Source: Anthoceros angustus (taxonomy: Eukaryota > Plantae > Anthocerotophyta). Taken from it: DNA of 64,000 nt. Shown here piece after piece: positions 784 through 46,600 of this stretch. The translations under genes and the position numbers were made by a program. The number at the start of each line of letters is the position of its first letter. Position 1 is the first letter of the stretch. The stretch spans positions 620,001-684,000 of the forward strand of contig MU008160.1 in assembly GCA_010909165.1 (NCBI GenBank). Reading direction: 5' to 3'. The notes beneath the pieces are model-generated. The model was not told the DNA's origin. It was given only the letters and a program-made list of their open reading frames with translations, and did not search any database.

Positions 784-959
784 GGTCGAGGGCGTCCACA
801 GGGCAGCTACTCCAGCTCCTCCCTCCAGACTCCAACCACTACCAGGGAGAGGGGTGTTTTACAAAACCCCTTTTGCAAATCTCCCAATCTTTACAGCTCT
901 AAACACCTCCGTTATAAATTGGTTTAAGTTTCGCTGGTGTGGCAAGTTTTAAGACTCGG

Positions 960-3549: not shown

Positions 3550-3767
3550 GCTTGTGGTGCACCCAATCGGATGATCCGTGAGGCGGGCCCTCCTCTCCCG
3601 AATCTCGCCGTTACCGGGCGGTTCGACAACCGCTACACACGACGCCATCCTCCCTCGGCCCCTCGGGTCCTTCACGGGGCCACCACCATCGGCCTCTAGC
3701 GTCGGCGGGGCTCCTCCCCACCCCCCGAGGTCTGCCCCTCGACTCGAACTCGTGAGTCCGCTTATTT

Positions 3768-3915
3768 CGGGTCCGCCAGGTCCGACCTTGTTCGGGTCCG
3801 GACCTCGTGGTCCGGACGGGGTCCGGACTGTGGTCCGGACGACGGGGTCCGGACTCGTGGTCCGACTTATTACCGAGGTCCTGTGGTCCGGCCTCCGGGT
3901 CCGGACAAAGTCCGA
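3768..3915. repeat. Degenerate tandem array of GGTCCG(G)AC (also ~20575-20760, ~25375-25530 and mirrors)
   Basis: About ten GGTCCG/AGTCCG cores separated by 3-12 nt. Confidence 0.75.
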
Positions 3916-6298: not shown

Positions 6299-6538
6299 GG
6301 TAAGGGTATTAAAGCCCAATATGCTTAGACTAATACACTTAGTCTAAGTTAGGTGTCGATTAAGTATCATTAGTTAGCTTGGAAGCTAATCACTAGGAAG
6401 CTTCTTGTGCTCCTTCCTTAGCTTCTTGTGGAGCCCTATTGGAGGTATAAATACCCTCAAGCCTCATCTCAATGTGAGAGAGCTACTCTTGCCTCCTCCT
6501 CTCCTCTCCTCTTCCACCATGGTGCCCACGATCCTTCA
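6299..6538 (+). repeat. Copia 5' LTR
   Basis: Direct repeat of 11161-11425; ends in CTTCA followed by the PBS. Confidence 0.9.
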
Positions 6539-6609
6539 AGCGGTATCGAGCCATGGTTTGGTTGTGTTGTGATGCTAGAATTTTCTAGCTGCGGGACGGC
6601 TCGTGGAGT

Positions 6610-7260
6610 GCAGGTGATCGGCGGCGTGCAGCCGCGGCGGATGAGGTGGCGAGGCAAGCGCGACCGCGGGCGGCGAGCGGCGGAGGCCGTGGCGGCGCGG
6701 CAGCGGGCGTGCGAGCCGGCCGCGGGCCCGGCAGGCAGCGGCCGCGCGGCCGCGGCGCGGGCGGGCCGCGGGCGGCGGCCGAGGCAGCAGGCGCGGCCCC
6801 GGCCAGCCCGCGGCGCCGCCGGCCCAGCGCGGCCTTGGCCCGCGGCGCAGCGCCTTGAGCCCCGCGGCCGCGGCCGGCAGCGCCCGCGAGCCAGCGCCCG
6901 AGCCGCAGGCCGAGCCCGCGCCAGCGCGCCAGCCTTGCGCGCCCATGAGCCCGCGGCGCCGCGCCGGGCGCCAGCGCGGCCGCGCGGCGCCTGGCGAGCC
7001 CGCGGGCGCGCGCGGCGCCCGCGCCAGCAGGCCCCGCGGCCTTGGCGTGAGCCCGCGAGCCCGCGCAGCGCCGCCTTGAGCCCGCGCAGCGCCCGGCCGG
7101 CGCGCCCGGCCGCCAGCGCGCGCGGCCGCGCGGCGCGCGCGCGGGGTGTGGCGCGGCGCGTGTAGCCGCGGCCTTGCTGGCCGTCTTGGCGCAGCGCGTG
7201 GCCAGCGGCGTGCGTGGTAAGAGTGCGTGGCGGCGGGCGGCGGCAGGCGTGGCGGAAATT
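6610..7260. repeat. Extremely GC-rich low-complexity tract in the Copia 5' leader (also ~17290-17930 and ~61555-62200)
   Basis: e.g. 6721-6780 is 58/60 G+C; CGCGG/GGCC/CCCGC words; lies between PBS and gag ATG. Confidence 0.9.
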
Positions 7261-7396
7261 GAGGTCGGGCGGTGGCGGTCGTCGAGCGATTCGGATTACT
7301 CGGTGGAGCGATCAGCGGCAAAATACCGGGCCACGGTGGTCTTCTTTGACTTTTCTAACAAGGCGAGTTGAGTGTTTAATGTATCGATTTTTGAGT

Positions 7397-10300: not shown

Positions 10301-11115
10301 GCGAGCCATATACTTGGCATGCGTATTCGTCGGAGCAGACATAAGCGTCGCTTTATTTGTCTCGAGACGGAATACATTAAGTGCTTCAACGTTTCAACAT
10401 GGAGAAGGAAGCCATTGGGTACTCCATTGCCTCCATATGTGAAACTTTCAAGCGCGGATTGCCCAAGCTACGAGGAGGACAAAAGCTGAAATGGAGAAGG
10501 TCCCATACTCATCATAGGGAGTTTGATGTATGCAATGATTGCTACGTCACGACATTGCCTTTGCGGTGGGAGTGGTTAGCGAGTTTATGTCAAACCACGG
10601 CAAGAAGCATTGGGAGGCGATAAAAGGAGTTATGAGGTAATGGTACAAAAGCTTTGTGCATATGTTTTGGTAGTGAAGATGCATGTGTGGTTGGGTACGG
10701 ATGCGATTATCACGGATATGGACAAAAGGAGGTCCACATCGAGTTATGTCTTCACGTGCCTTTGGAGGCGATCTCATGGCGATCTCGTTTGCGATCGTGC
10801 ATTCGCTATCTACCACAGTAGTATGTTGCGACAGCGAGGCTTGCAAGGAAGCCATATGGCTTGCTCGTTTAGTGGGAGACTTGGGGATCAAGGTTGAGTG
10901 CCGGTGTTGCATTGTGATAGCAGTGCTATCCAATTGGCAAAGAATCCGTGTTTCATGCGAAGACTAAACATGTGGATGTGAAGTATCACTTCATTCGAGA
11001 GGTGTTGGACGACAGAGGGTACAACTTGTCAAGGTTCACACTGACCGAACCCTAGATATTCTTACCAAGGGACTCTCTACAGCAATTTGCACAAGCTCGG
11101 ACAATGGGCATGAGA
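7397..11115 (+). pseudogene. gag-pol: Copia gag-pol polyprotein, fragmented by indels
   Basis: MFNIEKLDGTNF (gag); CHYCHKRGHFKKC zinc knuckle; WIIDS (protease); RLGHMS; DVCGPM..ASLGGASYFVTFIDDFSRKVWV (integrase); ARLVAKGFKQ and LILYVDDMLI (RT); DKRRSTSSYVFT, EACKEAIWLARL, FHAKTKHVDVKYHFIRE (RNase H). Confidence 0.93.
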
Positions 11116-11160
11116 TAGTCCATTCTCCTCTGAAGGTAAATTGGCCTTTAAGTGGGAGGT

Positions 11161-11425
11161 TGTAAGGGTATTAAAGCCCAATATACTTAGACTAATACAC
11201 TTAGTCTAAGTTAGGTGTCAGTTAAGTATCATTAGCTTAGCTTAAGCTAATCACTAGGAAGCTTCTTGTGCTCCTTCCTAGGAGCTTCTTGTGGAGCTTC
11301 CTAGGGAGCCCTATTGGAGGGTATAAATACCCTCCAAGCCTCATCTCAAATATAGTGAGAGAGCTACTCTTGCCTCCTCCTCTCCTCTCCTCCTTCCACC
11401 AGCATGGCTGCCCCACGATCCTTCA
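11161..11425 (+). repeat. Copia 3' LTR
   Basis: Starts TGTAAGGG right after the PPT and ends CTTCA. Confidence 0.92.
11322..11329 (+). promoter_or_regulatory. TATA box of Copia LTR (TATAAATA)
   Basis: Canonical TATAAATA, present at the equivalent position in the LTR copies at ~6447, ~18100 (-) and ~61384. Confidence 0.7.
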
Positions 11426-12300
11426 CGAGGTCAAGAAGTGCAGGGGGTGTGTGAGTCACCTTCTGCTTCTCGGGCATGCAGTGCGGATGGCACTTAGTAT
11501 CCGGTCATGGGCGTAGTTCATGAGTTTATTAGATCCTGCGGATGAGCCCATTTGTCTTCTCTGTCATTGGCCTTAGGATTGTAGGGTGCCGTCTTGCGAT
11601 GATTGATGCGAAATACTCCGTCATGGCGGCCACCACATCATTAAGGAAATGGGTTCCCCTATCACTTACCAAGCGGCGGACATCCGTGCGGGTTATGATG
11701 TTCTCGTCATTTGGCCACGGTATTTGCGAGTCCGTTCTTGTCGCCTCTACCACAGTGCGGTGGTCCGTTGCCACGGGATGTATCTCCTTTGTGTGTGTGT
11801 CTTGTCGTGGTCCAGTCCAACAAAGTCAATACCCCACTTTTGAAAGGTGCGGTGCCAATATCGGTACTAGCGGCCCAGTGTCGTCGGGGTTGGCTTTCCG
11901 ATCCGTGACAAGCATCACACTTCTTCTAAGCGGTGGGTGTCCCCATACATTGTTGGCCACCGGTATCCGCTTCAAAATCTTTTGGTGGTGACTGTCTTTC
12001 GTAGTGTCACCCCAATCCTTTGCATTCCCTTGGCTCCACATCTCTGCGGTTGCAAGTACCTTCGTTCTACTCCGTCCGGCCCTAATTTGAACACACACCG
12101 TTGTACATTACGAAGGGTCGAGCATAGTGCACGAATGCCTCCCTCATCCAGAGTGATTTTGAGCTCCATTCCCAGAGGTGCCTCTTTCTTCGTAGGTCGG
12201 ACGGCGGACCCTCCTTCTCACGCTAAGGCTGCAGTTCTCGTAGCTTGGGGTTCGTCTGGGCTCCTCCGGTTGTACTTTTCTGCGGATGAGACATTGGTTG

Positions 12301-13190
12301 CCGCAGAAAGTACAACCGAGGAGCCCAAATGACCGAACCCCAAGCTACGAACCGGCAATTAGTAGCGAGAAGGGAGGGTCCGCCCGTCCGACCCACGAAG
12401 AAATAGAGCGGTACCTGGGAATGGAGCTTCAAATCGACTCGTGGATGAGGGAGGCATTCGTGCACTATGCTCGACCCTTCGTAATGTACAACGGTGTGTG
12501 TCAAATTAGGGCCTGACGGAGTAGAACGAAGGTACTTACAACCGCAGAGAGGAGCGGCCGTCAAGGGAATGCACGAAGGATTGGGGTGGACACTACGCAA
12601 AGACAGTCACCACCAAAAGATTTTGAAGCGGATACGGTGGCCAACAATGTATGGGGACACCCACCGCTTGAAGAAGTGTGATGCTTGTCGGATCGGAAAG
12701 CCAACCCCGACGACACGGGCCGCTAGTACCGATATTGGCACCGCACCTTTCAAAAGTGGGGTATTGACTTTGTTGGACCTATACACCCACGACAAGACAC
12801 ACACAAAGGAGATACATCCCGGTGGCAACGACCATCGCACTGTGGGTAGAGGCGGTGGCAAGAACGGACTCGCAAATACCGTGGCCAAATTCTCGCACGA
12901 GAACATCATAACCCGCACGGATGTCCGCAGCTTGGTAAGTGATAGGGGAACCCATTTCCTTAATGATGTGGTGGCCGCCATGACGGAGTATTTCGCATCA
13001 ATCATCGCAAGACGGCACCCTACAATCCTAAGGCCAATGGGTCGACAGAGAAGACAAATGGGCTCATCCGCAGGATCTCGAATAAACTCACAAGTGAACT
13101 ACGCCCATGACTGGATACTGTCGCCATCCGCACTGTGCCTCCGATAGCAAGCAGAAGGTGACTACACACCCGACCCCTTACTTGACCACG
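12301..13190 (+). pseudogene. pol: Gypsy integrase, N-terminal and core (mirror of 11426-12285 minus)
   Basis: WPTMYGD..CDAC.RIGKP; PILAPAPFQKWGIDFVG; LVSDRGTHFLNDVVAAMTEYF; EKTNGLIRRILNK; interrupted by Copia in the PTPYL.YG motif. Confidence 0.92.
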
Positions 13191-16100
13191 TGAAGGATCG
13201 TGGCTCCGGGTGGAAGGAGGAGAGGAGAGAGGAGGCAAGAGTAGCTCTCACATTTGAGATGAGGCTTGGAGGGTACCTCCAATAGGCTCCCTAGGAAGCT
13301 CCACAAGAAGCTCCTAAGAAGGAGCACAAGAAGCTTCCTAGTGATTAGCTTAGCTAAACTAATGATACTTAATCGACACCTAACTTAGACTAAGTGTATT
13401 AGTCTAAGTATGGGCTTTAATACCCTTACAACCTCCCACTTAAAGGCCAATTTACCTTCAGAGGAGAATGGACTATCTCATGCCCATCTGTCCGAGCTTG
13501 TGCAAATTGCTCGTAGAGAGTCCCTTGGTAAGAATATCTAGGTTCGGTGTGAACCTTGACAAGTTGTACCCTCTTGTCGTCCAACACCTCTCGAATGAAG
13601 TGATACTTCACATCCACATGTTTAGTCTTCGCATGAAACACGGATTCTTTGCCAATTGGATAGCACTGCTATCACAATGCAACACCGGCACTCAACCTTG
13701 ATCCCCAAGTCTCCCACTAAACGAGCAAGCCATATGGCTTCCTTGCAAGCCTCGCTGTGCAACATACTCTCTGTGGTAGATAGCGAATAATGCACGATCG
13801 CAAACGAGATCGCCATGAGACGCCCGTGCGTGAAGACATAACTCGATGTGGACCTCCTTTTGTCCATATCCTCGCATAATCGATCTGTACCCAACCACAC
13901 ATGCATCTTCACTACCAAAACATATGCACAAAGCTTTTGTACCATTCGGATACCTCATAACTCTTTATCGCCTCCCAATGCTTCTTGCCGGTTTGACATA
14001 AACTCGCTAACCACTCCCACCGCAAAGGCAATGTCGACGTGTAGCAATCATTGCATACATCAAACTCCCTACACTGATGAGTATGGGACCTTCTCCATTT
14101 CACTTTGTCCTCCTCGAGCTTGGGCAATCCGCGAAAGTTTCACATATGGAGGCAATGGAGTACCCAATGGCTTCCCTTCTCCATGTTGAAACGTTGAAGC
14201 ACCTGTTAATGTATTCCGTCTCGAGACAAATAAAGTGACGCTTATGTCATTCCGACGAATACGCATGCCAAGTATATGGCTCGCCTCCCAAGTCTCATTT
14301 CAAAGTGAGCATTCAACTTTGACTTCAACGAAATCTCATCAAGATCGCTCAAAGAATTAGCATATCATCCACATAGAGGATCAAAATGAGCAAGCTTTGA
14401 TCCTTAGCTTGCTTCAGATAGAGGCAATGATCCTCATCCACGCTTGTAGAAAGCATAAATGAGTGGAACTTGTGATACCACTGGGTGCTGCTTTCAAACC
14501 ATAAAGGCTCTTCCTCAACCCGCACACCGATGCTCTTTGCCCTTCTCAACAAAACCTTCCCGCATGTAGACGCCCTCTTGAAGGTCACCATGCAAGAATG
14601 CTCTTGACATCCATCCGCAAGTTCCATATCATCTCGCAACCAAAGCAAGAACACATCGCAAAGTTGTCATTTTGACTAGGTGAGAAAATCTCATCAAAGT
14701 CAATGCCTGTTGTTGCTTGAAACCCTTAGCAACCACGGGCCTTGTACTTTGGTTTGCCATCATGACCTTCATCTTGTACACCCATTTGCACGTAGTGCCT
14801 TCTTATCCTTAGGCAACGGAACCAACTCCCAAGTTTGGTTCTTATGCAATAATCATTTTTGATCGCATGGCCTTCTCCCACTTGTCTTTGTTACTCGCTG
14901 ACAGAGCCTCTTTGTAAGAAGAGGGTTCCCAACTTCAAGATACATAATCCAGATGGATCATACCGCTGAGGTCGTGTAATCCGCCTCGACCACGGCACTG
15001 TGCACCTCTATAGGAGCTTGTTCGACTCTTGGTTCATCTATGGAGGAATGTGCTCCACATTACATATCAACCCCGCCCATGATGATCATGTCCATCTTCT
15101 TGGAAGATCACCCTTCGCACCTCCAGCTTGGAGTAGGCTTCCTGCATCTTGTTCTCATTGAAGAACACGTCTAGTACGAACAACCTTTCTAGCCTCCGGA
15201 TCCCACAAACTATCCCATCTCAATCACCATAGCCAAGAAAAATACATTTCTTGGACTTAGGTGCCAACTTGTCCCGAAACTCTTTTGGAACATGGCGATG
15301 CCTCATGCCAAACACTCGCAGATGCTTGTAGGATGGTTTCTTTCCGCACCATAGCTCCTCCGAACCTCATCAACTTTTATTAGGAGATCTGTTAATAAGA
15401 TGAACCGCAGAGACACCGCTCGCCCAAAACCCATTAGGCAATCCAGAGTTTGACAACAAACTACGCATCCTCTCGAATGGTTCTGTTTCATCCGCCACAC
15501 ACCATTTTGTGGAGGAGACAATAATTCTTTTGATTCCTTGGAATCAATGACCGGAAAGCTAAACATACTCCACCATTATCTCCTTAGACACTTCAATCGG
15601 TGGATCGATTCTCTACAAGGGTGACAAATTTCAAACACCGCCGAACTTCATCCTTTTTCCTCAAAGGATAAACCCACACCTTGCGTGAGAAATCATCTAT
15701 GAAAGTGACAAAATAAGAGGCACCGCCTAATGATGCAGAGGCATAGGTCCACATACCCGTGAACCAACTCAAGAGGTTTACTTCTACTTTACCTCGTTCG
15801 ATGTGATGATTTTGTCTGCTTCCCATATAAACAGTGCTCACACATCGAGAGATCGAGAAGTTAAGCAGTGGATATAACCGTAACGAGATAAAACCTTCAT
15901 TCCCTTCTCGAGACATATGTCCTAACCGCAATGCCACAAGGAAACATTTTTGCTCACATGATCACATGATCTTTGATGTGTTTACTGGTGAGTACAAAGT
16001 GCCACACTCGATCCACGAGCTAACACAAGAGAACCTTTGGAGATCTTCCAAGAGTGATCCCCAAACCAAGAAGTAACCAGATCATCCAACCGTCTCGCGC

Positions 16101-18259
16101 TAATCATGCTCTTTGTCAACTTGAACATGCCTAACGCCCTTCAAAGATGAATGAAGATCCGTTGTCAAACTTGAGTTGCACATCACCCACGCTGCGATCC
16201 GCATGCATAGTTATTTCCAAGCCTAACGCATCCTTTCCTTGTAGCATCATACGTGTTAAACCACTCTCTATGAGGAGTAACATGGAAAGATGCACCGAGT
16301 CAATTATCCAATTGCGTAATAAATGACTATCCACGGTTAATTAAAGATTCAAGTAAGAAGAGATAAGGACATCTCCGTCCTCAACGTAGTTTAACTCTTC
16401 CAACCGATGCAAAGTCGCCTTCTTGTCTCCGCTTCTTCTCTTTCCTTGGTCCTTTTGAACTTCTCGCACTCTCTTTTGAAGTGACCCTTTGTGACAATAG
16501 TGACACTCCACATTCTTGTTACGACTACGAGATTTGCTACGAGAAAAGCTTCCGTTGCTTGCTTCCCTTCGCAGCGTGGACCTCCCTCTCACTATGAGGG
16601 CACGGAACCTTTGGAAGGTTCCATGTTTTTCCTGCTCACCTCCTCGCCAATGTGCTACCTTCTACATTTACAATGGTAAGACCACTAGCAAAGGCAATTA
16701 CTCGAGTGCACGAAGGTATCCCAACTCTCCGTAATGTGACCATGAAACATAGCTCTCACTAACTGGGAACGTGATACCTTGAGATGAGAGTCGGCTGAAA
16801 ATGGTATTGAAATCATTCGGATGATCGGACATCCTCGTCCCTTCCTTCATCTTCAAGTCCACCATGCTTCAACCAATACACCGAGAAGCCGCACTTTGCT
16901 TCTCATACAGTCATACGCCATCCGTAACTCGTGGTCTTATCTTTCACATTGAAGTACACCGCTTTTGACAATGTTAGCATGATAGTAGATCTAGCAAGCT
17001 CATCCAGTCCCGCCACTCATCCCGTCATACTATCCGGTTTGACGCCTAACAACTTTATGGGCTTGATCTTTTCGCACTAGAACATTATACACTTGTTCTT
17101 TCCGAACGGGAAGTTAGTACCATCTAACTTCTCGATATTGAACATGACGCTTTCGATGATGAAGACATCATGACTCAAAAATCGATACTGATAAAACACT
17201 CAACTCGCCTTGTTAGAAAAGTCAAAGAAGAAAAGCCACCGTACGGTCCGTGTCTTTTGCCGTTGATTCCACCGAGTAATCCCAATCGCTCGACGATCTC
17301 GCCACCGCGCTGCACTCAACCGCGGCCGCCACGCCCGCCGGCCCCGCCCCGCCACGCACCGCGCCACCGCGCGCCCGCACGCCACCGCCGCGCCCGACGC
17401 ACGGCGCGACGCGCTGCCGGCGCCGGGCGCGCACCCCCGCTGCGCGCCACGCTGCGGCCAGCCGCGCGCCGGGCGGGCCGCGGCCAAGGCTGCGCTGCGG
17501 GCGCGGCGCAAGGCCTGGGCCCCTGGCTGCGCCCCGCCGCCGCGCCGGCCCGGGGCCTCGGCCGGGGCGCCGCGCCGCGCTGGCCCGGGGCTGCGCGCGC
17601 GCCGGCCGTGGGCGCCGCGCCCGCTGGGCTCGCCGCGCACGCTGCTCGCGCGCGCCGCGGGCGCGCGCTGGGCCGCGCCGCGCGCGGGCCGGCCGGCCTG
17701 CGCGCTCAAGGCCCGCTGCGGGCCCCGCTCGCGGCCCCGCGCCGCGCGGCCCCGCGCCGGCCCGCGCCGCCCCGCGCCGCGCCCGCGGCCGCCGCTGGCC
17801 CGCCGCCCGCCGCGCTCCGCGGCTCGCCGCCTGCGCTCGCCTGCGGTCCGCACGGCCTCGCCGGCCGCCCGCCCGCGCGGTCGCGGCTTGCCCACGCCTC
17901 ATCCGCGCGCGCGCTGCGCCCTCGCCGCGATCGGATCACCCCACGAGCTGCCGCCCCGCAGCTAGAAAATTCTAGCATCACAACACAACCAAACCATGGC
18001 TCGATACCGCTTGAAGGATCGTGGGCAGCCATGGTGGAAGGAGAGGAGAGGAGGAGGCAAGAGTAGCTCTCTCACATTGAGATGAGGCTTGGAGGGTATT
18101 TATACCTCCAATATTCCCTAGGAAGCTCCACAAGAAGCTCCTAGGAAGGAGCACAAGAAGCTTCCTAGTGATTAGCTTAAGCTAAACTAATGATACTTAA
18201 TCGACACCTAACTTAGACTAAGTGTATTAGTCTAAGTACATTGGGCTTAATACCTTACA
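13191..18259 (-). mobile_element. Mirror copy of the Copia element
   Basis: LTRs 13191-13430 and 18012-18259; same domains on the minus strand; flanks CCACG / CACG. Confidence 0.94.
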
Positions 18260-18680
18260 CACGGACACTCCCGTAATGCCGAGAGTTTGAAGTGCCCACT
18301 TTCGAGTAATGATGGAAGGGAGATCCGAGGAGGAAAGCCAACTCGGCGACTCTTGGGGTTTGTGCAAAGGTGAGGATGTGGAAGAAGCTCAAATTGAAGA
18401 TGCATTGGTAAAACCAGAAGATTTGCACGATCGCCGATCATGAATCGAGTATGTAAAGGAAGGGGACCGCCCTCCTTTATGATAGTCACACATGCATTTT
18501 CTGCAAACTTCACCGAGATGGATGGGTCCGTATCAAGTGGTGCAAGTATATGACAACGGGTCCGCCCAGCCACGACACTAGATGGAGAGCTGCCCACTCA
18601 AACGGGTGGTGAAGAAGATATCATGCTTAGTGTTGGCGGAGACGCCAATGTATGAGAAGGGGAGTATGTGGGCGGTACTC
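18260..18680 (+). pseudogene. pol: Gypsy integrase C-terminus (continues 13190 across the Copia insertion; mirrors ~5880-6298 and ~60810-61228)
   Basis: MPVEFEVPT motif (ORF 6097..6285-), then a degenerate FPGKLH..GP region. Confidence 0.8.
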
Positions 18681-21600
18681 GGGAGTTAGGAAATAAGTAG
18701 GGTTTCGCTTTTTTTAGGATTGAAGGATAAATAAGGCGGAAAGGAGGAATAAATTGGGGTAGCGCCGGACGAGGCTGAGTACTCCGGACTGAGTGAACAA
18801 CGGACCTTTGTACCACTATGGAAGCCCGGACTACGCCGGAGTAACGGATAAGTCCGGAACCCACCCGGTCAAGGATAAGTACGCCAGGAAAGTAACCCAG
18901 GAGGGGGCGTGAGGATGACGCAGGCGGGGCGCCACGTGAGTGGCGGAGGTCGCATGCAGTGAGGCTGACCGAACCGCCGGTTATAAGGGTATTCACGCCC
19001 CAAGGGCGGGCGTAGCGCCGGAAGCGTAGGGTCGTAGGGCGTAGCCATGCACCCACGAGGGCGCCTTCCCGCCTAGAAGCTTCTACAAGCTGGCAAGGAG
19101 CAGGAGGTCATCGCGCAGCCCATCCTCGAGCGGTCTCTCCCCCAGCGGGGCAAAAGAGCTGTTCCTGACCTCACCTCCTCCGAGCCCAGAAAGAGGGCAA
19201 AGGAGTTAGAGGCGAGGGCCAAAGAGGGTGAGACCGGACTACCACTGGACCCGAGGGTCCCGATGACGAGTCCACCGACTTACTCCGGATCATGGTATGG
19301 AGGTCCTTATCGAGAAATGCCGCTCCACCACGGACTTTGTGGGGGCCTCACAGCACGCCGTGGAAGAAACACGCGAAGTCCCGCCATATTATGGACGGAA
19401 TGCTTTGGGGTCTCGTGTGGCCAAATGGAGAAGACCTGTGGAAGTGGAGGCCACCCGGAGGAGGATGGTGGAACCCAAGAGCAAGTGAAGGCCGAGGGGC
19501 AAAGGAAAGTGGAGTCCCCGCCGATCGAAGGAAACGGGTGGCGGAAGAGGCCCGAGGCGAGAGAGCTCGACCGCGGAGGCGGCCCGCCAGAGAAGCCGCG
19601 CAAAGGCGGCGAGTGAAGCCGGGCAAAGAGCGACCGGGATCACTGACGGATCGAACCGGTGGAAAGAGTCGACAGTACCGAGAACCTGGCTAGACAAAGG
19701 CTATGGAGGCAGGCGCACTCGGGAGATAGGGATCTCGAGCACACCGCAGAGAAGGAGGCGGGCATGGAGGACAAAGAAGGACACGCCGAGCTACAACCCA
19801 AGATGCGCTTGAGAAGCAGTGATTCTCAACGAGAATCCACGACTCGAGCAAAAGAGTAAGCCCGCCCGTCTCAAGACGGAGGAAAATCGCCATCATCCAA
19901 GGAGTTGGACGCTGCGTGAGCCGGAGGAAGTCCTGGACGGAGGTATCTCACCGCCTGGAGAGGGAGCCGGAGCTAAAGGCCGAATGAACGGAGGAGCGCG
20001 AGCACGAAGGTAAAAGAAGCCGCCGTCCACCGAAAGGCGGAAGGGAACGCCGCTATGGCGGTAAGCCGGGCGGAAAGGAAACGACGGAGCCGGAGCAGTG
20101 AGCAACAGCTGCAATGCAGGAGGTGACCGAGGCCGCCTTGTAGCCTCGCGTGATACGCCTGCCACCGCCAACCGGCAGGAGAGGTGGCCCAACAAGCCGA
20201 AAAGACGCCTCGAACACTTATGGCGGAGGGAGTATCGGTGCCCGCACACGTGGAAGAGGCAATTCAACAAGTCGATCTGCACTTTGCCTATTACCACGAG
20301 CCCGGGCGAGAAGCCTCGACTCAGAAACGGGACGGACCTCGGAAGGCCTGTGGAAGGAGATGAAGGCCACGGGAGACAGTGACCCTAGTGGCCTGCTTGA
20401 GATGACGGAGCGCGGAGAGGAGCAACCGGAGGAGCAACGAGGGAGCGGATGCGATCGAGGTAAGCACCCCGACCTCACCATGGAAGGAGGGGCCAACGGC
20501 GAGTCAGGCGATCGGGAACAGGAGGACTGAGGAGAGCCACGGAGGAGTCCTGTGAGGGAGGAAACCCGGTGATGGAGTCCGACTTTGTCCGGACGAGGGG
20601 AGGCGACCGTCCACCCCAGAATAAGTCCGACCAAGTCCGACTACAGTCCGACCTCAAGTCCGGACTGCACAACTGACCCCGAGGTCCGGACCCCGCAGAC
20701 AAGGTCGGACCTAGCCGGCCGACCTGTGAAGCCGGACTCGGGTTCGTGAGTCGAGAGACCTCGAGGACCGGGCCGCGGCAAGAAGGAGGAGCCCCTCGAC
20801 TTACGCTAGGGGAGCCGAGGGTGGCCCCACCGCTGGACCTGGAGGCCAGTGAGAGGTAACGGGCGTCGATCACGCAGAGCCCAACCCGGCATTCCGGAGA
20901 GGAGGGGCCCGCCACGGATCATCCGATTGCACCACAACCTGTGACGGGGATTGACCACCCATTCCGAGGGCCTGTGGACCTTCTTCTACCGAGATAGGGG
21001 AGAAGATGTAGGCGTCGATTAGGGTATACCGAGCTGGCTATCACCGTAATAGGGTGTAATAAAGACGCCACCTTGGGCGCAGATAAGAGGGCCGAGGCTG
21101 TAGTAAAGCATCTTTCTTGGTGTTGATGCCTGCCTGCACCTTGTGAGTCTTCACAACGTGAGTCCCGAGTCACCGAAAGGTGCACACCCGGAGATTGATC
21201 AAGGTCCCGTGACGGACTTAACGCTGTGGTGTGCAGGAAGGTGATCACGACCGTGCTCGTCCGAGCCGCGTCCGCACCGAATGGACTGAACGCGGAGCCG
21301 GAGGAACTGGAGGTGTGTAGAGCCTGACGAGAGGCCCGCGGAACGGAGGAGGTCCGGATCAGAACGCCCTTTTTTCTAAGATCAAGAGAAGTGAGGAGAG
21401 AGGAAAGGACCGGATGCGTGAGGATGTATGAACGATACGGACGAACGGTCTAAACGCTTGGCCATACCGGCCCAGACGGTGAAACGCAGAGTAGTTAGAG
21501 TATGTGTGTGAGTTGAGACCTAATAGCGCTAAGGATGAGAATCACCCGAACGCGTAAACGGGGCCTATCATTCCTTTGGAACGGACTTCTTCCTACAACG

Positions 21601-23553
21601 CGACGGATTGTGCGCTACTGCTGGCCATCAAGAAAAGTCACAAGGCCCTTGCAGAGGACCTCTCCTATTGAAGACCTCCTTGTCGGAGGATGCCTGTGGC
21701 CTTTGGAATCCTTTCCTTCGCTTTTGCTAGGCGCCTGGTACCTCATTCAGACGCCGCCTGCCTGGCCCTTTGTCCCGGCCCGGGTTTGATAATAAGATTA
21801 TGGATACTCTTGGGGACATCTGGGCCTGGGGCTTTTGAGTGCCTGGGGCGACTGCTCACCGGGCAAGCATCCCCGCCTGCAATTTGGAGGCGAGGATCGC
21901 CTCATCGAGGTCTCTTCCCACGGCTTGGGGAGTTGGGCCCTCCGCCTCGCCTTGGCTTCCTGCTTCATCCTCCATGACAAGCCCTTTCTCGAGGATCTCG
22001 ATCAAGTGTGAGGAGGGAACCTTCTCCAATCGCCCTGAGGCAGCGTAGACATGTTATCGCAGATGCTCTAAGGACTTCCTCCTTTCTACATTTATCATCG
22101 ATGGCTTTAGGGATTGTGTGCATCTCGCCGAGAAGCCTCGGCCAGCTTTTCCGCCCTCCGTGACCCTCCATCTCTGTGTCCACTAGAGCGCCCTTTTGTT
22201 CGGAAGGGAGTGTGTTGGCCACCGCCCGCCCATGCATACGGGATTTCACATCGCACCAACCACCTTCACTATCGCGATGCGATCTGCCTCGCCTACTCCA
22301 CCGGCAGGGCTTCTTCGCCTCACTTGTGAGTGCGGCTCGCCTGACGCCTCGTGTCCACCTTGCTCGTTGTCCCCACGGGTCATCGCCACACCATGACGCC
22401 ATCCGTGACGCCATGTTTGCCATTGCTCGCGAAAGTGGCTATATGGCCCGGAGGGAGCGGAGTATACTCTTCTTACGTCGCTCAATCGGACTTATACCTT
22501 GTCCGTGGCGACTGTGTGTGGTGGCGGATGTAGTGGTTACACGACCGACGTGACGCCACCTCCGCCTGTGTCATCACCAACCGCCCAGCGTGCCGCTGCA
22601 GCCGCCTCTCAAGGTCCGCAAGAGCAGGATGCAAGCGGGCCACCTTTTATCCCGCTTGCTCTAGAAACGATGGCAATGGTCGAGGACTTTGACAAATCTA
22701 TCAAGTCTTGTGCCAAAGCTACCATGCAGCAGTATAGTGTGGCGTCTCCTGTGATCACAAAGATACTCCGGCTGGTTTATTGTTTTCAGCCGCCTCAACG
22801 GATTCTCCATGGCGACGGTGGTGATGCCTTCCTCTGGTTTGCTGCGCTTATTCTACCTGTGATATGACATTGTGGTGCAGCTTGGTCACTTTAGGGAGCA
22901 TTCTCTTCACTCACCCCGGGTCCCCATTTGTTGTCCTTCCTAGATGGTCTCTTTCCATCGTTCTTCACCTCAAGTAAATCATCTTCATAAATGGCCTCCA
23001 ATCATATTTTTTGGGTTTATTAATAAATATCTTAGATAATAATAATAATATTTGGAGAAAAAGGCTTACAAGCGTAATCTACAATAAATATCATCTTTTT
23101 TAAAAGCCTTTTCTCAAAATTTGTTCTTTATTTTGAAGAAATAAAGAACAAATTTTGAGAAAAGGCTTTACAACGTAATCTACAACAAGGGAGCCACGTC
23201 ATCGCATGTTGTAAATGGCTTCCAATCATATTTTTGTGATTAGAGATGTTAATAAAGATTTTAGAAAATAAAGATCAAATTTGAAAAAAGCTTTACAACG
23301 TTATGACAATGGAGAGCCATCATGAATGTTGTTGTAAATGAGCACCCAAAAGAGTGCCACATCATCCAACTAGAAACCCGTCAGAACCGAGTCTTAAAAC
23401 TTGCCACACCAAATGAAACTAAACCAATTTATAACGGAGGTGTTTAGAGTCAGAAGATTGGGAGATTTGCAAAGGGTTTTGTAAAACACCTCTCCCCGGT
23501 AGTGGTTGGAGTCCTGAGGAGGAGCCGGAGTAGCCGCTCAGGACGCCTCAACC

Positions 23554-24510
23554 ATGAGTGGAGGAAGGAGGTGGGAGTCGACCCCATAGCCGCCAAAGAA
23601 TATGTAAAATTTGGGGAGAATAACGAGGTGAAGACGCCAGGCTTTTGTGTGAACTTTTGAACATGTGTCTCATGTAAATTTAGAAGCCTCAGGTCATAGG
23701 TCTCGAATTTTTCTGAGTGCTTCAAAGTCATGCACTCGGTATAGTCGTACCTATGGGGCTGCACTCACCACCGATTGGGATGATTTGAAAGCTGCATTTT
23801 AATTATGTGGCCCGAAGAGTTATGCATCACACGCCGGCTGAGGACTTTGAAGAGGAGGGAACCTTTGTATGATTATGTAGAAAGGATTTATGGTTCCTTG
23901 GAGAGAGTACCACCACGATCGCTGTATATGTAGCTTTCACAAAGCAAGGCCTATGATATGAATTTTCTGATAAAGGTTCGGATAGCATAGGTTGGAGTCA
24001 GGGAACGATGTAGATCCAAATGCCATAGAAGACTTAGAGCTAGAATCGGCAAGGTAAAGATTTCAAGAATGAGAGATGGAAGAGTTTAAGAAATTGGGAA
24101 GCAGGATGTGAATGCGATTTTATTTCTCGTGTGAAAACTAGAGAGCGGATTGTGGCTATACAGATTTCATGACAAGGAGTTGAGGAGACCACGATTGGAA
24201 GGAGAGGGTCATGAGCAAAGTACAAGTGTGATTGAAGTTGTACGGCAAGAGGTGCAAGGGAAGGGCCAAGTGTCCATAAACGCAGGTTTGTGGTTTGGTT
24301 GCATGTAATAATCTAAGAGTTCAAGATGAAGTAAAGGAGCATCAACGGTGGAGGACAGGAGTGCCTTTTAGGGTGAGCAATCGAGGGCGTAGTGGGAGTG
24401 CAAGTGGCGATGGTGGCAAGAGCGATGGAGAAAAAGAAATCACTTTGGAGAAAGGAAAAGCGGCATGCAAAAATGGTGTCTGGGAGGTACGTGAGCTGGA
24501 GCCGGAGCAA
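23554..24510 (+). pseudogene. gag: Same gag in the mirror arm; abuts the LTR of element B (also ~54978-55934 minus)
   Basis: Reverse complement of 1-783 plus downstream continuation. Confidence 0.7.
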
Positions 24511-31760: not shown

Positions 31761-32856
31761 TGCATGTTGAGAACTTGAGGCATCCACATATATTTGACCC
31801 GGAAAGGCCTCATGGAAATCTGTCACACGTGTTTTGATATTTAGTACGCAGCAGACACGCAGAAAATCTGAGAAGGGTGCATCTCAAGTCTCAAGCTGGA
31901 GGCAAGGAAACCCACAAGGTCTTCCACTCCGCCATACATTCACGAAGACCTCCAATGTGGGGACTGCAACTTGGAGGAGATTCTCGCTCTACCAAACTCT
32001 TGTCTTCCATCGGGGTCTTATTCAAGCATGGTCGGCCGATTAAGCATAAGCACCGATTCCGGTGACCGCGATGGCCTCATGTTCTGCCGAGGTCGGCGGC
32101 ACCGGCAAGGGGCCATCACGCCACCATTTATTAAAACGAGCTTTCTTCACGTCCGTCAGTGCGTAGTCATGGGTGCCTTGAACATCCCTCCTAAAGGACT
32201 TTTAGTTAAGCACTCCTCACCTCCGTATCTCCGATTGGGTGCCATTTGGCAACCATATGGTAGATGACGTTTCAATTGGTTTGTGTTGTGTCGTTCGAAG
32301 TGGGTACCCAACAGAAATCCGTCTTGACTCTCTAAAGGGCGGGGTGGTTACACAGTACCTGGGCATCCTGCCATAGTCTGTTGTTAGACTCATGTTCCGA
32401 CAGCGGTCCCTGAACGATGGCCACAGTATGGCAACCGGACCTTGTGGACCCAACAAATTGGTCTGTGTACATTCTACTAGGAGATCCTGCTCACCTCACT
32501 TCAGGAGTCAACCCCGGCAAACATAAGCCTCAGGTGCAGCAGTGTCAGGAGCCCAGCACTTCCACGTCCGAGAAAATGTGTGTGGGGACAGATTCTCCAG
32601 CGATGGTCGTCGCCAGGAGCAGGAGCACTTGTGGCAACAATTTTTCTGGACCCTACCATGTGGTGGGACAACAGACGAGATAAGAAGAGCTCCCGCCCTG
32701 ACTTCCGGCGTAAGGGTCCGGCGAGGTCCTGTGGTTAAACAACATGTTTAAGCCAGCTTGGGTTGATGAGCAGCTCGTTTCCTTGGATATGCAGATGGGT
32801 CATGCCTCCTTCCAGTCGAGCTCCGGATAAGCCTGAACCTGGCAGGTGCAGGAGAA

Positions 32857-35800
32857 ATGGGCGTCGTAACGGCTGGAACCGTGAGCATGTCAGCAGGGGA
32901 AGCTTCTGAGGCCGTTGGAGCCCTGGAATCTCTGGCGCAGACAGACTCCCTATTTCTCAGTCTCTGTTTTACACTGTGCTAAACTGTGTACAGCTAAGAA
33001 GGATCTGGTTGTGGGCGACGAGTTCATGATCTCACTGTCAAACTTGGGTACGAGTCGAATGCATACTTGGGGAACCATATCTTGCGCATGTATGCATGTG
33101 GAGGTAGGCTGCAGGAGGCCATGGATGTGTTCACCAGGGTGGGCAAACCAGATGCCTTCATGTGGTTTCCATAATCTCTGCATATGCTAAGCATGGGAAA
33201 CCTAATGAGGCCATACAACTGTACCATGAGATGCGTAGGTCAGGAGTGAAGGCGGATGCTCACGTCTTTGTAGCTGCCCTTCAAGCTTGTGCATTTGCCG
33301 CCGACGAATCTGGCAGAAAAGTGCACTGTGATGTGTGTGGCATTCCTCCTGACTTGTTTGTTGGCAACTGCCTGTGGACATGTATGCAAAATGTGGCGAA
33401 CTGAAGATGCACGCCAGGTGTTTGACAGCATGGCACGGATGTGGTGACATGGAATGCCCTGATATCTGTATGCAAAATGTGGTGAACTGAAAGATGCACG
33501 CCAGGTTTTTGACAGCATGGCCAAAGGATGTGGTGACATGGAATGCCCTGATTGCTGGGTATGCAGCAAGGACTCGGACATGAGGCACTTGTTCTGTATG
33601 GACAAATGGAGCAGGAGGGCTGATTTTGGCTAACCATGTTACTTTTGCTTGCCTTCTGAAGGCCTGTGCAAGCACTGGTGCCTTACAGAAGGGCAGGCAG
33701 CTGCACACCTGATTGTCGAAAGAGGACTGCTGGATAACATAGTGTTGTGCAACTGGTGGACATGTATGCAAAATGTGGTGAACTGGAAGATGCACGCCAG
33801 GTTTTTGACAGCATGAACAAAGGATGTGGTGACATGGAATGCCCTGATTGCTGGGTATGCAGCAAGGACTTGGACATGAGGCACTTGTTGTGTATGGACA
33901 AATGGAGGAGGGGGCATTTTGGCTGACCATGTTACTTTTGCTTGCCTTCTGAAGGCCTGTGCAAGCAGTTTTACAGAAGGGCAGGCAGCTGCACTCACAG
34001 ATTGTCAAAAGAGGACTGCTGGATAACGTAGTGTTGGGCACCTGCCTGGTGGACATGTATGCAAAATGTGGTGAACTGGAAGATGCACGCCAGGTTTTTG
34101 ACAGCATGGCCACAAAGGATGTGGTGACATGGAATGCCCTGATTGCTGGGTATGCACAGCAAGGACTTGGCCAAGAGGCGCTTGTTGTGTATGGACAAAT
34201 GGAGGAGGCAGGCCTCATTTTGGCTGACCATTACTTTTGCTTGCCTTCTGAAGGCCTGTGCAAGCACTGGTGCCTTACAGAAGGGCAGGCAGCTGCACTC
34301 ACAGATTGTGGAAAGAGGACTGCTGGATGATGGTGTTGGGCACCTGCCTGGTGGACATGTATGCAAAATGTGGTGAACTGGAAGATGCACGCCAGGTTTT
34401 TGACAGCTTGGCCACAAAAGGATGTGGTGACATGGAATGCCCTGATTGCTGGGTATGCACAGCAAGGCTCAGAGAGGCTTGTTGTGTATGGACAAATGGA
34501 GCAGGAGGGCCTCATTTGGCTGATGTTACTTTTGCTTGCCTTCTGAAGGCCTGTGCAAGCACTGGTGCCTTACAGAAGGGCAGGCAGCTGCACTCACAGA
34601 TTGTTGAAAGAGGACTGCTGGATAACGTTTGGTGGGCACCTGCCTGGTGGACATGTATGCAAAATGTGGTGAACTGGAAGATGCACGCCAGGTTTTTGAC
34701 AGCTTGGCCATAAAAATGTGGTGACATGGAATGCCCTGATTGCTGGGCAAGGACTAGAAGGCGCTTCTTGTGTATGGACAAATGGAGCAGGAGGCCTCAT
34801 TTGGCTGACCATGTTACTTTTGCTTGCCTTCTGAAGGCCTGTGCAAGCACTGGTGCCTTACAGAAGGGCAGGCAGCTGCACTCACAGATTGTTGAAAGAG
34901 GACTGCTGGATAACGTAGTGTGGGCAACTGCCTGGTGGACATGTATGCAAAATGTGGTGAACTGGAAGATGCACGCCAGGTTTTTGACAGCATGAACACA
35001 AAGGATGTGGTGACATGGAATGCCCTGATATCTGGGTATGGTACTTGTGATGATGGTCACAGAGCACTAGCTTGTTTTGAGGAGATGCGGGTTCAGCCTG
35101 ATGGTGCTACTTTTACTTGCCTTTTAGCATGCAGTCATGAGGACTGGTCCAGGGTCGCAAGCACTTTGATTCCATGGCTGAACAGCATGGCATCAAACCT
35201 ACTATTGAGCATTACATTGCATGATTGATCTTCTTGGGCCATTTAGATGAGGCAGAAGATGCTATTTCATGTGAGGCCAAAGTAATGTTGTGGGCTTGAC
35301 GTCTTTGTTGAATGCCTGCAAAAGTCACGGGGATATAGAGGGCGATGTGGTGTTTTGAAAGCATTGTTAGGCTGGACCTCAGGGGCGTCTATATGTGCTC
35401 ATGGCCAATGCCTACGCAGATGCAGGTAGGTGTGGACCGATGTAGACAGGATTGAAACACAGAGAAGGCAGCAGGAGCTAACAAGAAACCTGCAGTGGCG
35501 ACCATTGAGGTGAATAAGCAGGTACATAGATTTCTGGTGGGAGAAAGGAGAGAGGATATTGCTTAAAGGTAGAGAGCACGAATGCACGTCTGAAGCAGGA
35601 AGGAGGCGTACCTCACACAAAGTTGGTGTTGAAGCCACTGTGTGAGAAGGAAAAGGAAGATGCGCTTTGTGGGCATGCTGAGAAGCTAGCTCTGGCGTTT
35701 GGTCTGTTGAACACTCCAGTGGGACACCTCTGGTGGTAACGAAGAATCTACGCATGTGCAGTGACTGCCACAGTTCCACGGAGATCATGTCAAGGCTTGA

Positions 35801-35867
35801 ACAGAGGGACATTGTTGTAAGGGATGGGTACCGTGCATCGATTCGCAAATTGAAGGGTCGACCGTGA
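32857..35867 (+). CDS. PLS-class PPR protein with E1-E2 and DYW:KP (GRP-ending) deaminase domain; candidate organellar U-to-C RNA editing factor; frameshifted in this sequence (read error or pseudogene); start codon uncertain
   Basis: Repeated P (VVTWNALIAGYAQQG), L (HVTFACLLKACASTGALQKGRQLHSQIVERG) and S (VLGTCLVDMYAKCGELEDARQVFD) motifs. P2/L2/S2 at ~35005-35280; E1 NVVGLTSLLNACKSHGDIE; E2 YVLMANAYADAG; KKPA at 35483; GHAEKLALAFGL at 35671; LRMCSDCH at 35748; KGRP-TGA at 35853-35867. Reconstruction needs several frameshifts. Confidence 0.92.
33500..35000 (+). repeat. Five near-identical tandem P-L-S coding units (~290-300 nt each as written)
   Basis: GACATGTATGCAAAATGTGGTGAACTGGAAGATGCACGCCAGGTTTTTGACAGC recurs at ~33760, 34052, 34354, 34650 and 34939. 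Confidence 0.93.
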
Positions 35868-38800
35868 GGTGTGCCCAAGTGTACGCCACAGAACATTGCT
35901 TATTTTCTTGGGGTTGAATGTGCTTGCCTAACCCAGGAGGACCATGAGTCTCCATTCCAGACTTTCGACCAAAGTTTGGGGATTTTTTCAAGAACAATGG
36001 AACGAACCATGAGGGAGCTCAATTCGTGACCTCTGGTCGTTTTGTTCTTTTGCCATCGACCCATTTGTTGCCGAAAACACGGCCATAAACAAGCTCGAAG
36101 AAACTGGAAGCATCGTTTTGAGAAGCTTCCAGAGTCCGCCGTGGAGTCCATGGCCAGATACCATGACAGGAGGGTTAGGCTTGCGGTTGCAGAACTAATG
36201 TACCGCGGCTCCCAGCCTTCGAGTTTGATATAATATAATATAAAATTATATCATATGCTTATGATTATCTCATCCACGTACAACGCAGGCGCTAATGGTC
36301 ACTACCTACAAACTGCCCTTTGGCGAGACCCACTACACTGGCTATTGGCGAGGACTCTAAAATTGCTCGATCAATAGTGAGTGATTGAGGATCAAGGGTG
36401 AGCTTTTCGAGATTTAGGAATCAAAAGATTTACCGTGTGAGGGACTCAATAGTAATCCTCCTCACAGGAGTGAGGGGCTCTAAACAAATCATCTTCATGT
36501 TAAGTATGGTATTCAAAATCTTCCTCCTCAACATGCAAAATGAAGTGAGGACTTTAAAATACTTTTGAAGAGGAAGAGTCCTCACGACTCTTCCTTTTAG
36601 AGTGAGTCCTCAGGGGAAGAGCTCCTACCGGTCAGGGTGTCACCGCCAATCGATGTCATGGCGAGACTACGAGGAAGAGGAGGATCGTCATCGCTATGTG
36701 TAGAGGATCATTGATGAGGGCGAAGAGCTATTGAGACTCCGCATGAAGAATCTCATGGTGGCTGCTTGAGGGTGAGTTGAGGATGCCCCAGGAGGGGTTT
36801 GGATATTTGAGAAAGGAACTGTCTGTGTCATGTTAAGAAGTCTTATGGGACGTTAAACATCGCCTTATAGGACTAAACCTATTGTACATAGTGACAAAGG
36901 ATGTGTGCCACTAGAGGTAGCCTTGGGGGTCAAGGTTTGCTCTACATTTTTGGTCAATACATGTTCTCTTTGAATTGAAAGCAAACATCGTGATTCCGTG
37001 GACATTAAGAGGTCCTGTAAGACCCATTGCCATGAAGGTGGAAAGATCGTCACGCACTCGGGTTTATATGCCGTCCATGCTTGAACTCACTGATCATGTC
37101 TGACAAACAACATGAAGTCCCGCTTTTGTGTACCTTTTGAAAGCGCTCAGTAAGAGGTCCCTCCTCCTCCATAGGTCCGAACTGGATTGATCCCCAGCCG
37201 GAGTTGAGAGTGGTATTAGTATGGCCAGTGCCCCTACCGCCATTGGGATTGTCCCAGTGAATGCTGACTCCCAAGTATCCGAGTCAATGCCGGACTATCC
37301 AAGAATGGCGCTTGCAAAGAAAGTAATGGGGCACCTCCTCTCACCTCCTTAGCTTGATGCGAAATCTGAAGGGAGACTATGTACAGAGGGAGATGAGTCA
37401 CTCAAGTTGGCCATGTCCCTTGAAATTGCTAATCCTCCGCTGCCTTCTTGCGTATGCACGCCAGCGAGGTAATTTGCTGAACACTACGGATCTCAGTATG
37501 CTGACGTCCCATGTTCACCAAAGTGCATATTCCATGCAAACTACCAAAAAGAATGCAATCCTCTGCGGGCCCGTGAAGGAATCAACCGAACCTAGCGACA
37601 CGATGCAAAGGGCCCGCTCACTGGAAAATTCCACAATGCCGCACTTTGTCCCATGACAGAAATAAGATGCACGGGCAGCATGTCTTACCTGTATGGAGCT
37701 CGCAACCATGGTGGTGTGCCATGGTCCAGACCCCTATGGTGCCATAGGCGTATTGCTCATCTTTCATGACGCATAGATGGAGGACACGTTAGATAGATGT
37801 CAAGTTAGAGGGAGGTTAGCAAGGATAAAACTTAGTCCCATGGCGTACCGAATAAGAAGAGCGTGTTCTTTGGCCTTGTGAACAGAAATCCAGTTCAAAT
37901 GACGGCCGGCTTTTGGATGATAAGTGGATCTCCTCCGATCACCATATCTAGCTAGGATAGATGTCACATAAAGCAAATGGCCAATTTAAGCCTTCTCAAG
38001 AGAATCTTAGAAGAGGTTCCTTTCAAAATGTTTGAAGAATCCAAAGCTTAGATCAAGGCAAGCATGGAGTTGTTGGAAAGTCAACAATGTCCTTGCTCAC
38101 AAGTCTTCTTTTATTCAATTGAGCGATGATAACAAAGCCTGTGAAAACTCTAAACCGCACTGGGCCTAAATCAATTTGCGTACGACAGCAATGGCTCTTC
38201 TTCTCTCCTCACCTTCTCCATGGCGTGGACTCACAAAATTAAATACGTGAATTGATTCAAGTTTCCGCCTTGCTCAATAATTTCTCCAACATTGCAACCA
38301 TGTTGCTCTCAGACGCGCATGTTTGTCAGCTGCACCCCATGATTCCACTGTTTCTGAGAACACCACAATTTCTTCATTGCCACGCGGCTCCGCTTCCCAA
38401 CGAATTCTCAAACTTAACCCTGGGAGAAACATTGCCACGGATTTGCATTAGTTCCCCATCACCCTGCCCAGATTGGCACGGAAGGAGAGAGGGGTGAGGA
38501 GAGGAAGGCCATGCCTTGGCATTGGTAGGTCCACTAAGCACCGCAACGATATTTTGGCAGCCTAAAACGCAATGTTGGCATTCCTAACCTATGCAGAATT
38601 AGACCGTCGAAACAGATCGAGAATCTCCTTCAATTTGCATTCACAAATTGAGGAGAGGCCTAAATGGATGGCGGAGTAGTGGAATACCTTGTTGGTTTCC
38701 TCACCTTTGATTTATTCAGATGCTCGCTCATTACTAAAATAAAAAAAATATGACAAGATTTCTATGAATATTCCAAAGTTCCCAGCGTCTAGGGTTTAAC

Positions 38801-43620: not shown

Positions 43621-46600
43621 TCACGGTCGACCCTTCAATTTGCGAATCGATGCACGGTACCCATCCCTTACAACAATGTCCCTCTGTTCAAGCCTTGACA
43701 TGATCTCCGTGGAACTGTGGCAGTCACTGCACATGCGTAGATTCTTCGTTACCACCAGAGGTGTCCCACTGGAGTGTTCAACAGACCAAACGCCAGAGCT
43801 AGCTTCTCAGCATGCCCACAAAGCGCATCTTCCTTTTCCTTCTCACACAGTGGCTTCAACACCAACTTTGTGTGAGGTACGCCTCCTTCCTGCTTCAGAC
43901 GTGCATTCGTGCTCTCTACCTTTAAGCAATATCCTCTCTCCTTTCTCCCACCAGAAATCTATGTACCTGCTTATTCACCTCAATGGTCGCCACTGCAGGT
44001 TTCTTGTTAGCTCCTGCTGCCTTCTCTGTGTTTCAATCCTGTCTACATCGGTCCACACCTACCTGCATCTGCGTAGGCATTGGCCATGAGCACATATAGA
44101 CGCCCCTGAGGTCCAGCCTAACAATGCTTTCAAAACACCACATCGCCCTCTATATCCCCGTGACTTTTGCAGGCATTCAACAAAGACGTCAAGCCCACAA
44201 CATTACTTTGGCCTCACATGAAATAGCATCTTCTGCCTCATCTAAATGGCCCAAGAAGATCAATCATGCAATGTAATGCTCAATAGTAGGTTTGATGCCA
44301 TGCTGTTCAGCCATGGAATCAAAGTGCTTGCGACCCTGGACCAGTCCTCATGACTGCATGCTAAAAGGCAAGTAAAAGTAGCACCATCAGGCTGAACCCG
44401 CATCTCCTCAAAACAAGCTAGTGCTCTGTGACCATCATCACAAGTACCATACCCAGATATCAGGGCATTCCATGTCACCACATCCTTTGTGTTCATGCTG
44501 TCAAAAACCTGGCGTGCATCTTCCAGTTCACCACATTTTGCATACATGTCCACCAGGCAGTTGCCCACACTACGTTATCCAGCAGTCCTCTTTCAACAAT
44601 CTGTGAGTGCAGCTGCCTGCCCTTCTGTAAGGCACCAGTGCTTGCACAGGCCTTCAGAAGGCAAGCAAAAGTAACATGGTCAGCCAAATGAGGCCTCCTG
44701 CTCCATTTGTCCATACACAAGAAGCGCCTTCTAGTCCTTGCCCAGCAATCAGGGCATTCCATGTCACCACATTTTTATGGCCAAGCTGTCAAAAACCTGG
44801 CGTGCATCTTCCAGTTCACCACATTTTGCATACATGTCCACCAGGCAGGTGCCCACCAAACGTTATCCAGCAGTCCTCTTTCAACAATCTGTGAGTGCAG
44901 CTGCCTGCCCTTCTGTAAGGCACCAGTGCTTGCACAGGCCTTCAGAAGGCAAGCAAAAGTAACATCAGCCAAATGAGGCCCTCCTGCTCCATTTGTCCAT
45001 ACACAACAAGCCTCTCTGAGCCTTGCTGTGCATACCCAGCAATCAGGGCATTCCATGTCACCACATCCTTTTGTGGCCAAGCTGTCAAAAACCTGGCGTG
45101 CATCTTCCAGTTCACCACATTTTGCATACATGTCCACCAGGCAGGTGCCCAACACCATCATCCAGCAGTCCTCTTTCCACAATCTGTGAGTGCAGCTGCC
45201 TGCCCTTCTGTAAGGCACCAGTGCTTGCACAGGCCTTCAGAAGGCAAGCAAAAGTAATGGTCAGCCAAAATGAGGCCTGCCTCCTCCATTTGTCCATACA
45301 CAACAAGCGCCTCTTGGCCAAGTCCTTGCTGTGCATACCCAGCAATCAGGGCATTCCATGTCACCACATCCTTTGTGGCCATGCTGTCAAAAACCTGGCG
45401 TGCATCTTCCAGTTCACCACATTTTGCATACATGTCCACCAGGCAGGTGCCCAACACTACGTTATCCAGCAGTCCTCTTTTGACAATCTGTGAGTGCAGC
45501 TGCCTGCCCTTCTGTAAAACTGCTTGCACAGGCCTTCAGAAGGCAAGCAAAAGTAACATGGTCAGCCAAAATGCCCCCTCCTCCATTTGTCCATACACAA
45601 CAAGTGCCTCATGTCCAAGTCCTTGCTGCATACCCAGCAATCAGGGCATTCCATGTCACCACATCCTTTGTTCATGCTGTCAAAAACCTGGCGTGCATCT
45701 TCCAGTTCACCACATTTTGCATACATGTCCACCAGTTGCACAACACTATGTTATCCAGCAGTCCTCTTTCGACAATCAGGTGTGCAGCTGCCTGCCCTTC
45801 TGTAAGGCACCAGTGCTTGCACAGGCCTTCAGAAGGCAAGCAAAAGTAACATGGTTAGCCAAAATCAGCCCTCCTGCTCCATTTGTCCATACAGAACAAG
45901 TGCCTCATGTCCGAGTCCTTGCTGCATACCCAGCAATCAGGGCATTCCATGTCACCACATCCTTTGGCCATGCTGTCAAAAACCTGGCGTGCATCTTTCA
46001 GTTCACCACATTTTGCATACAGATATCAGGGCATTCCATGTCACCACATCCGTGCCATGCTGTCAAACACCTGGCGTGCATCTTCAGTTCGCCACATTTT
46101 GCATACATGTCCACAGGCAGTTGCCAACAAACAAGTCAGGAGGAATGCCACACACATCACAGTGCACTTTTCTGCCAGATTCGTCGGCGGCAAATGCACA
46201 AGCTTGAAGGGCAGCTACAAAGACGTGAGCATCCGCCTTCACTCCTGACCTACGCATCTCATGGTACAGTTGTATGGCCTCATTAGGTTTCCCATGCTTA
46301 GCATATGCAGAGATTATGGAAACCACATGAAGGCATCTGGTTTGCCCACCCTGGTGAACACATCCATGGCCTCCTGCAGCCTACCTCCACATGCATACAT
46401 GCGCAAGATATGGTTCCCCAAGTATGCATTCGACTCGTACCCAAGTTTGACAGTGAGATCATGAACTCGTCGCCCACAACCAGATCCTTCTTAGCTGTAC
46501 ACAGTTTAGCACAGTGTAAAACAGAGACTGAGAAATAGGGAGTCTGTCTGCGCCAGAGATTCCAGGGCTCCAACGGCCTCAGAAGCTTCCCCTGCTGACA

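Follow-up and report, generated by a model that had tools for sequence, protein, structure and literature searches.

A frame-broken GRP-type DYW:KP deaminase gene, a candidate U-to-C RNA editing factor, in an Anthoceros angustus contig

U-to-C exchange is the rarer direction of plant organelle RNA editing, and the enzymes that perform it are sought as programmable base editors. Proteins of the DYW:KP family are marked by a Lys-Pro box instead of the PG box and by an Ala or Cys after the catalytic His (HAE or HCE) (PMC9478123; PMC11845758). In PMC9478123 their C-terminal triplet is described as variable, the hornwort members are divided into two subgroups, DRH and GRP, named for their last three residues, and GRP proteins are given Glu at the position of PG-type Lys103 and Met92 at that of PG-type Val95. 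KP2 and KP3, two designer proteins based on the GRP subgroup, converted U to C when assayed in E. coli (Ichinose et al., 2022; PMC9478123). Two further papers report that Lys88 is essential for U-to-C editing (PMC11845758, 2025) and propose a lysine as the nitrogen donor (PMC11332814). According to the 2025 paper, only consensus designs had been assayed by then and no natural DYW:KP protein, so any intact natural GRP-type gene is a usable test object.

We analyzed 64,000 nt of Anthoceros angustus DNA (assembly GCA_010909165.1, contig MU008160.1, positions 620,001–684,000), referred to here as the window, and found in it a GRP-type DYW:KP domain whose reading frame is repeatedly broken. We consider it probable that this is the catalytic domain of a nuclear PLS-class, GRP-type DYW:KP gene that encodes a U-to-C editor, and that the frame breaks are sequencing errors. 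The class, the hornwort GRP subgroup and the signature residues have all been described before, and the gene in the window is an ordinary member. The original prediction had likewise called the class known, and this agrees with the catalogue of the family across 22 hornwort genomes (PMC13386178, citing Gutmann et al., 2020) and with the GRP subgroup of PMC9478123. Hornwort genomes contain many genes of this kind, and the locus by itself adds little.

A deaminase domain in three frames

At 35462–35867 on the forward strand, a DYW deaminase domain (Pfam PF14432) is spread over three shifting frames and can be read as three pieces:

35462–35563, + strand: piece A, frame 2; end of E2 and KP box, ...GANKKPAVATIEVNKQVHRFLVGERREDIA; colinear with the GRP-ending protein P0153 at 73% identity
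35563–35736, + strand: piece B, frame 1; KVESTNARLKQEGGVPHTKLVLKPLCEKEKEDALCGHAEKLALAFGLLNTP, with the HAE catalytic motif; PF14432 E 1.1e-8
35715–35867, + strand: piece C, frame 0 (codons to 35864); GTPLVVTKNLRMCSDCHSSTEIMSRLEQRDIVVRDGYR...KGRP, then TGA; PF14432 E 8.1e-12

Piece B matched PF14432 with 35.2 bits over profile positions 2–41 of 93 and piece C with 45.2 bits over positions 40–78. Both scores exceed the gathering cut-off of 24 bits, the two pieces jointly cover positions 2–78, and the matches are far beyond chance. Piece C also matched three entries in the PDB: 9kfx (a synthetic PPR-DYW), 7w86 (DYW1) and 7o4e (OTP86). The peptide strings quoted in the original prediction are present across the three frames, among them ...EDALCGHAEKLALAFGLLNTP... 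in frame 1 of 35563–35736, but the last ~15 profile positions are unmatched in the window. The prediction was also right that the program-made list of open reading frames splits the domain, and that KPA, HAE and GRP all occur.

The KP box reads KKPAVATIEV from 35483 onward and replaces the PG box. HAE, rather than HSE, lies at 35671–35679 in the context CGHAEKLA, and CSDCH at 35758–35772, with a spacing between the two as in homologues; together they form the HxE(x)nCxxC zinc signature. Piece C carries the remaining residues of interest together with its CxDCH motif. Lys88 and Met92 stand beside the CxxC in VVTKNLRMCSDCH (TKNLRMC), where the Lys88 numbering is inferred from the equivalence of Met92 with PG-type Val95 in PMC9478123. 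At the GRP-specific position, that of PG-type Lys103, there is a Glu (CHSSTEIMS in the window and CHSSTEILS in the GRP protein P0008, against CHSSTKI in DRH types). The terminal triplet GRP is encoded by ggt cga ccg tga at 35856–35867 in the frame of piece C and aligns with the GGRP and stop of two intact homologous loci (L001 and L002). As assembled, the tail (RDGYRASIRKLKGRP and a stop) is ~13 nt plus 2 nt short of intact homologues, and the GSCxC residues are therefore absent. The second C-terminal zinc site (H..F..G.CxC) is incomplete in this state, with HRF off-frame and the GSCxC codons falling inside the 13-nt gap relative to L001 and L002. Thus, the domain in the window has every KP/GRP signature residue except the C-terminal GSCxC.

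Placement in the GRP subgroup

For comparison with other domains we joined the pieces into 138 residues, with an X at each break, and used blastp in place of per-protein sums of tblastn bit scores, which were distorted by multi-HSP effects. The joined domain was 74.8% identical over 127 aa to P0153, 62–68% identical to other hornwort-type KP domains and ~46% identical to PG-type domains. A HMMER search with piece B against 1.84 billion representatives returned 186 matches, the best of which were KP-type at 66–72% identity. A follow-up search yielded four natural GRP-ending proteins (P0008, P0152, P0153 and P0157) and many DRH-ending ones; nearly all of these matches came from Logan assemblies, and one Nothoceros aenigmaticus transcript and one Ceratopteris protein were also present.

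In an IQ-TREE phylogeny of 92 DYW domains the window fell within the GRP clade (support 100/98), which was itself nested in a hornwort DRH-like group (100/90) within the KP half of the tree, the KP/PG split being supported at 100/99. When the last 15 residues were cut from every sequence, the window still grouped with the four GRP proteins (SH-aLRT 88.1, UFBoot 98). Membership of DYW:PG was rejected, the window lying far from that group in both the full and the tail-trimmed tree. Motifs, identities and both trees agree in placing it in DYW:KP. The original prediction had named clustering with DYW:PG as the outcome that would speak against it; because the window groups with the GRP clade in both trees, this test leaves the prediction standing. 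Sequence comparison thus supports the assignment of 35462–35867 as the C-terminal catalytic domain of a DYW:KP protein of the GRP subgroup.

Members of that subgroup, the basis of KP2 and KP3, share with the window the KPAxA box, HAE, Lys88, Met92, CxDCH, Glu for Lys103, the GRP end and the order E1-E2-DYW, as judged from the four GRP-ending Logan proteins. P0153 and P0008 also have in common with it an N-terminal WWDNR...PDF(R/K)...LWL...P.WVD.QL module. Unlike these proteins, the window is frame-broken, is without GSCxC as assembled, and carries five near-identical tandem triplets in its PLS array. Since its best DYW identity to any GRP protein is only that to P0153, it represents a different gene or species. 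The DRH subgroup (for instance P0154, P0155, P0159 and the Nothoceros aenigmaticus transcript P0006, the nearest named relative among the matches) has a KP-type domain, HAE and Lys88 as well, at the 62–68% identity given above, and forms sister groups with the GRP proteins in the tree. It differs from the window in having KPAKAC rather than KPAVA(G/T), a Lys at the position that is Glu or Thr in GRP proteins, and a DRH end. Canonical DYW:PG proteins such as OTP86 (7o4e and 7o4f) and DYW1 (7w86) belong to the same PF14432 fold family, contain the HxE...CxDCH zinc site and likewise close a PLS-E1-E2 array. They differ in their PG box, HSE motif, DYW end and C-to-U activity, and lie across the KP/PG split.

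The surrounding gene

Frame-tracking over tblastn matches gave a conceptual reading of ~3.4 kb (~32.5–35.87 kb) with the order N-terminal PDF-like module, PLS array, P2-L2-S2-E1-E2-DYW:KP:

32480–35867, + strand: PPR editing-factor gene, as far as homology reaches
32622–32790, + strand: N-terminal module, ...WWDNRRDKKSSRPDFRRKG / EVLWLNNMFKPAWVDEQLVSLD (also read as EVLWLNNMFKPAWVDEQL); found by tblastn and common to the intact GRP proteins P0153 and P0008
33466–34940, + strand: five near-identical tandem P1-L1-S1 triplets, 288–302 nt each as assembled

Colinearity with P0153 extends over the last ~330 aa, with 44–79% identity per piece. The N-terminal module is colinear with residues 62–118 of P0153 and 83–138 of P0008, and no Pfam family matched it. 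Each tandem unit differs from the consensus by 6–14 mismatches and 4–15 deleted bases, the deletions being private to single units, which suggests a true unit of ~306–309 nt. Directly upstream of the first of these triplets, at 33380–33465 on the forward strand, there is an 86-nt partial unit (MYAKCGEL...VVTWNALIS), after which a fresh MYAKCGEL begins at 33466. The partial unit may be a truncated repeat or else a stutter, and a real one would interrupt a single PPR motif.

As assembled, the gene has no single start-to-stop open reading frame and is untranslatable. Complete read-through requires at least 37–49 frame changes, about one per 70–90 nt. A homology-guided frame path can be read end to end without an in-frame stop; because the path search penalized stop codons by construction, this demonstrates no more than the existence of such a path.

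Frame breaks and function

We compared the breaks in the gene with the noise of the contig itself. The beginning of the window contains a fold-back whose arms, 1–12275 and 12310–24270, share only 81.6% identity; between them there are 1051 mismatches with a ts/tv of 0.8 and 631 gap events of 1–31 nt, including two of 13 nt and one of 31 nt. Such a profile marks two raw long-read passes over a single locus rather than diverged DNA, and it puts the contig error level at roughly 9–10% per arm if errors are shared equally. The gene itself is also present a second time:

43621–44005, - strand: mirror copy of the DYW:KP domain, exact, in the second arm of a 24-kb inverted duplication

The duplication pairs 15489–39648 with 64000–39840 (24.16 kb, 191-bp spacer, 99.996% identity, a single 1-nt gap). 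Within it 32000–37000 is 100% identical to 47488–42488 in inverted orientation, and the whole gene recurs at 47008–43621, likewise without a difference. The duplication looks like one read used in both orientations by the assembler, rather than a biological palindrome or a second sequencing pass. Use of the mirror copy (43.6–47.0 kb) as a second read for indel correction was therefore rejected, since a 100% identical copy carries no independent information on the gene. Searches for an accurate copy of the gene elsewhere found none, the best identity being 72% in a library search with piece B. They gave nothing closer with the DYW region of P0008 or with the N-terminal region of P0153, the latter output being swamped by multi-repeat PPR scores. 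A profile of the C-terminal third of P0153 plus seven pieces of the window also found nothing closer, the best match staying at 74.8%.

DNA alignment of the DYW region with L001 and L002 placed six gaps in the window, of 1, 1, 3, 1, 2 and 13 nt, each of them a deletion on the side of the window; there were no insertions. A 1-nt gap ends piece A at ~35561–35565, the 3-nt gap removes a His codon within piece B, another 1-nt gap ends piece B at ~35719, and the 2-nt and 13-nt gaps lie within the last 35 nt of piece C. The 13-nt gap takes out GSCxC, which is kept in all homologues.

Because the contig is noisy at the level of single reads, as the identity, ts/tv and gap events of the fold-back indicate, the frame breaks are most likely deletion-biased sequencing errors of an unpolished long-read contig and not mutations. 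The density of breaks in the gene matches the contig's own noise. Natural pseudogene decay produces far more substitutions than indels. Here, indel events and substitutions stand at ~1:1 to 1:2, in comparisons of the tandem units as well as of the two fold-back arms. This ratio and the low ts/tv argue against a true pseudogene, one that arose when a GRP-type PPR-DYW:KP gene was duplicated, in a family that expands in this way, and the duplicate decayed until it no longer encoded a working enzyme. So do the gaps in the DYW region, all deletions as in deletion-biased read noise, the equality of break density and contig noise, and a domain still 75% identical to its intact homologue. The many frame changes required, the loss of the C-terminal GSCxC and the truncated 86-nt unit are what decay would also leave, and we regard a pseudogene as unlikely, though of the alternatives it deserves the most weight. 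That the real locus is intact we hold to be likely. For practical purposes, frame breaks in this assembly should not be taken as pseudogenes, and the noise in the present sequence disqualifies it as a template.

For an intact gene, we infer the activity by analogy to designer GRP consensus proteins, which suggests that the protein would edit U to C. Its PPR array would dock on one organellar transcript, base by base; as predicted from the family, residue 5 and the last residue of each P and S motif would specify the RNA base, and for the repeated triplets, with N/D at P1 and T/D at S1, the reading would be roughly U-n-G. E1-E2 would then bring the target uridine, which lies downstream of the RNA bound by the array, into the zinc site (HAE...CxDCH), and this KP-type site may aminate it to cytidine, the proposed nitrogen donor being Lys88. 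An intact gene might instead encode something other than a dedicated U-to-C editor, such as a deaminase with C-to-U or dual activity, or an RNA binder without catalysis. The designer KP6 also performs C-to-U editing, single changes switch the direction, and that report knew of no assay of a natural KP protein (PMC11845758). The GRP-based KP2 and KP3, however, edited U to C in E. coli and showed no activity in the C-to-U direction (PMC9478123), and the window retains Lys88, HAE, Met92 and CxDCH, and we consider this alternative very improbable.

A more elaborate version of the preferred reading, that of an intact U-to-C editor, would take the array into account. Such a natural editor would be recently remodelled, its array derived from five-fold tandem amplification of one P-L-S triplet and headed by an OSB-like PDF nucleic-acid-binding module, and under the PPR code its target would be a periodic RNA of roughly (U-n-G)n. 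We give this only a small chance. If true, it would illustrate the origin of new editing specificities, and the gene would offer a candidate for the first assay of a natural KP protein.

Elsewhere in the window, ten of the longer open reading frames (133–298 aa) on both strands between 12310 and 30400, examined as a possible second gene for gauging frame-break density, had no Pfam match at E up to 0.01. Several of them are located in stretches of ~60% G+C.
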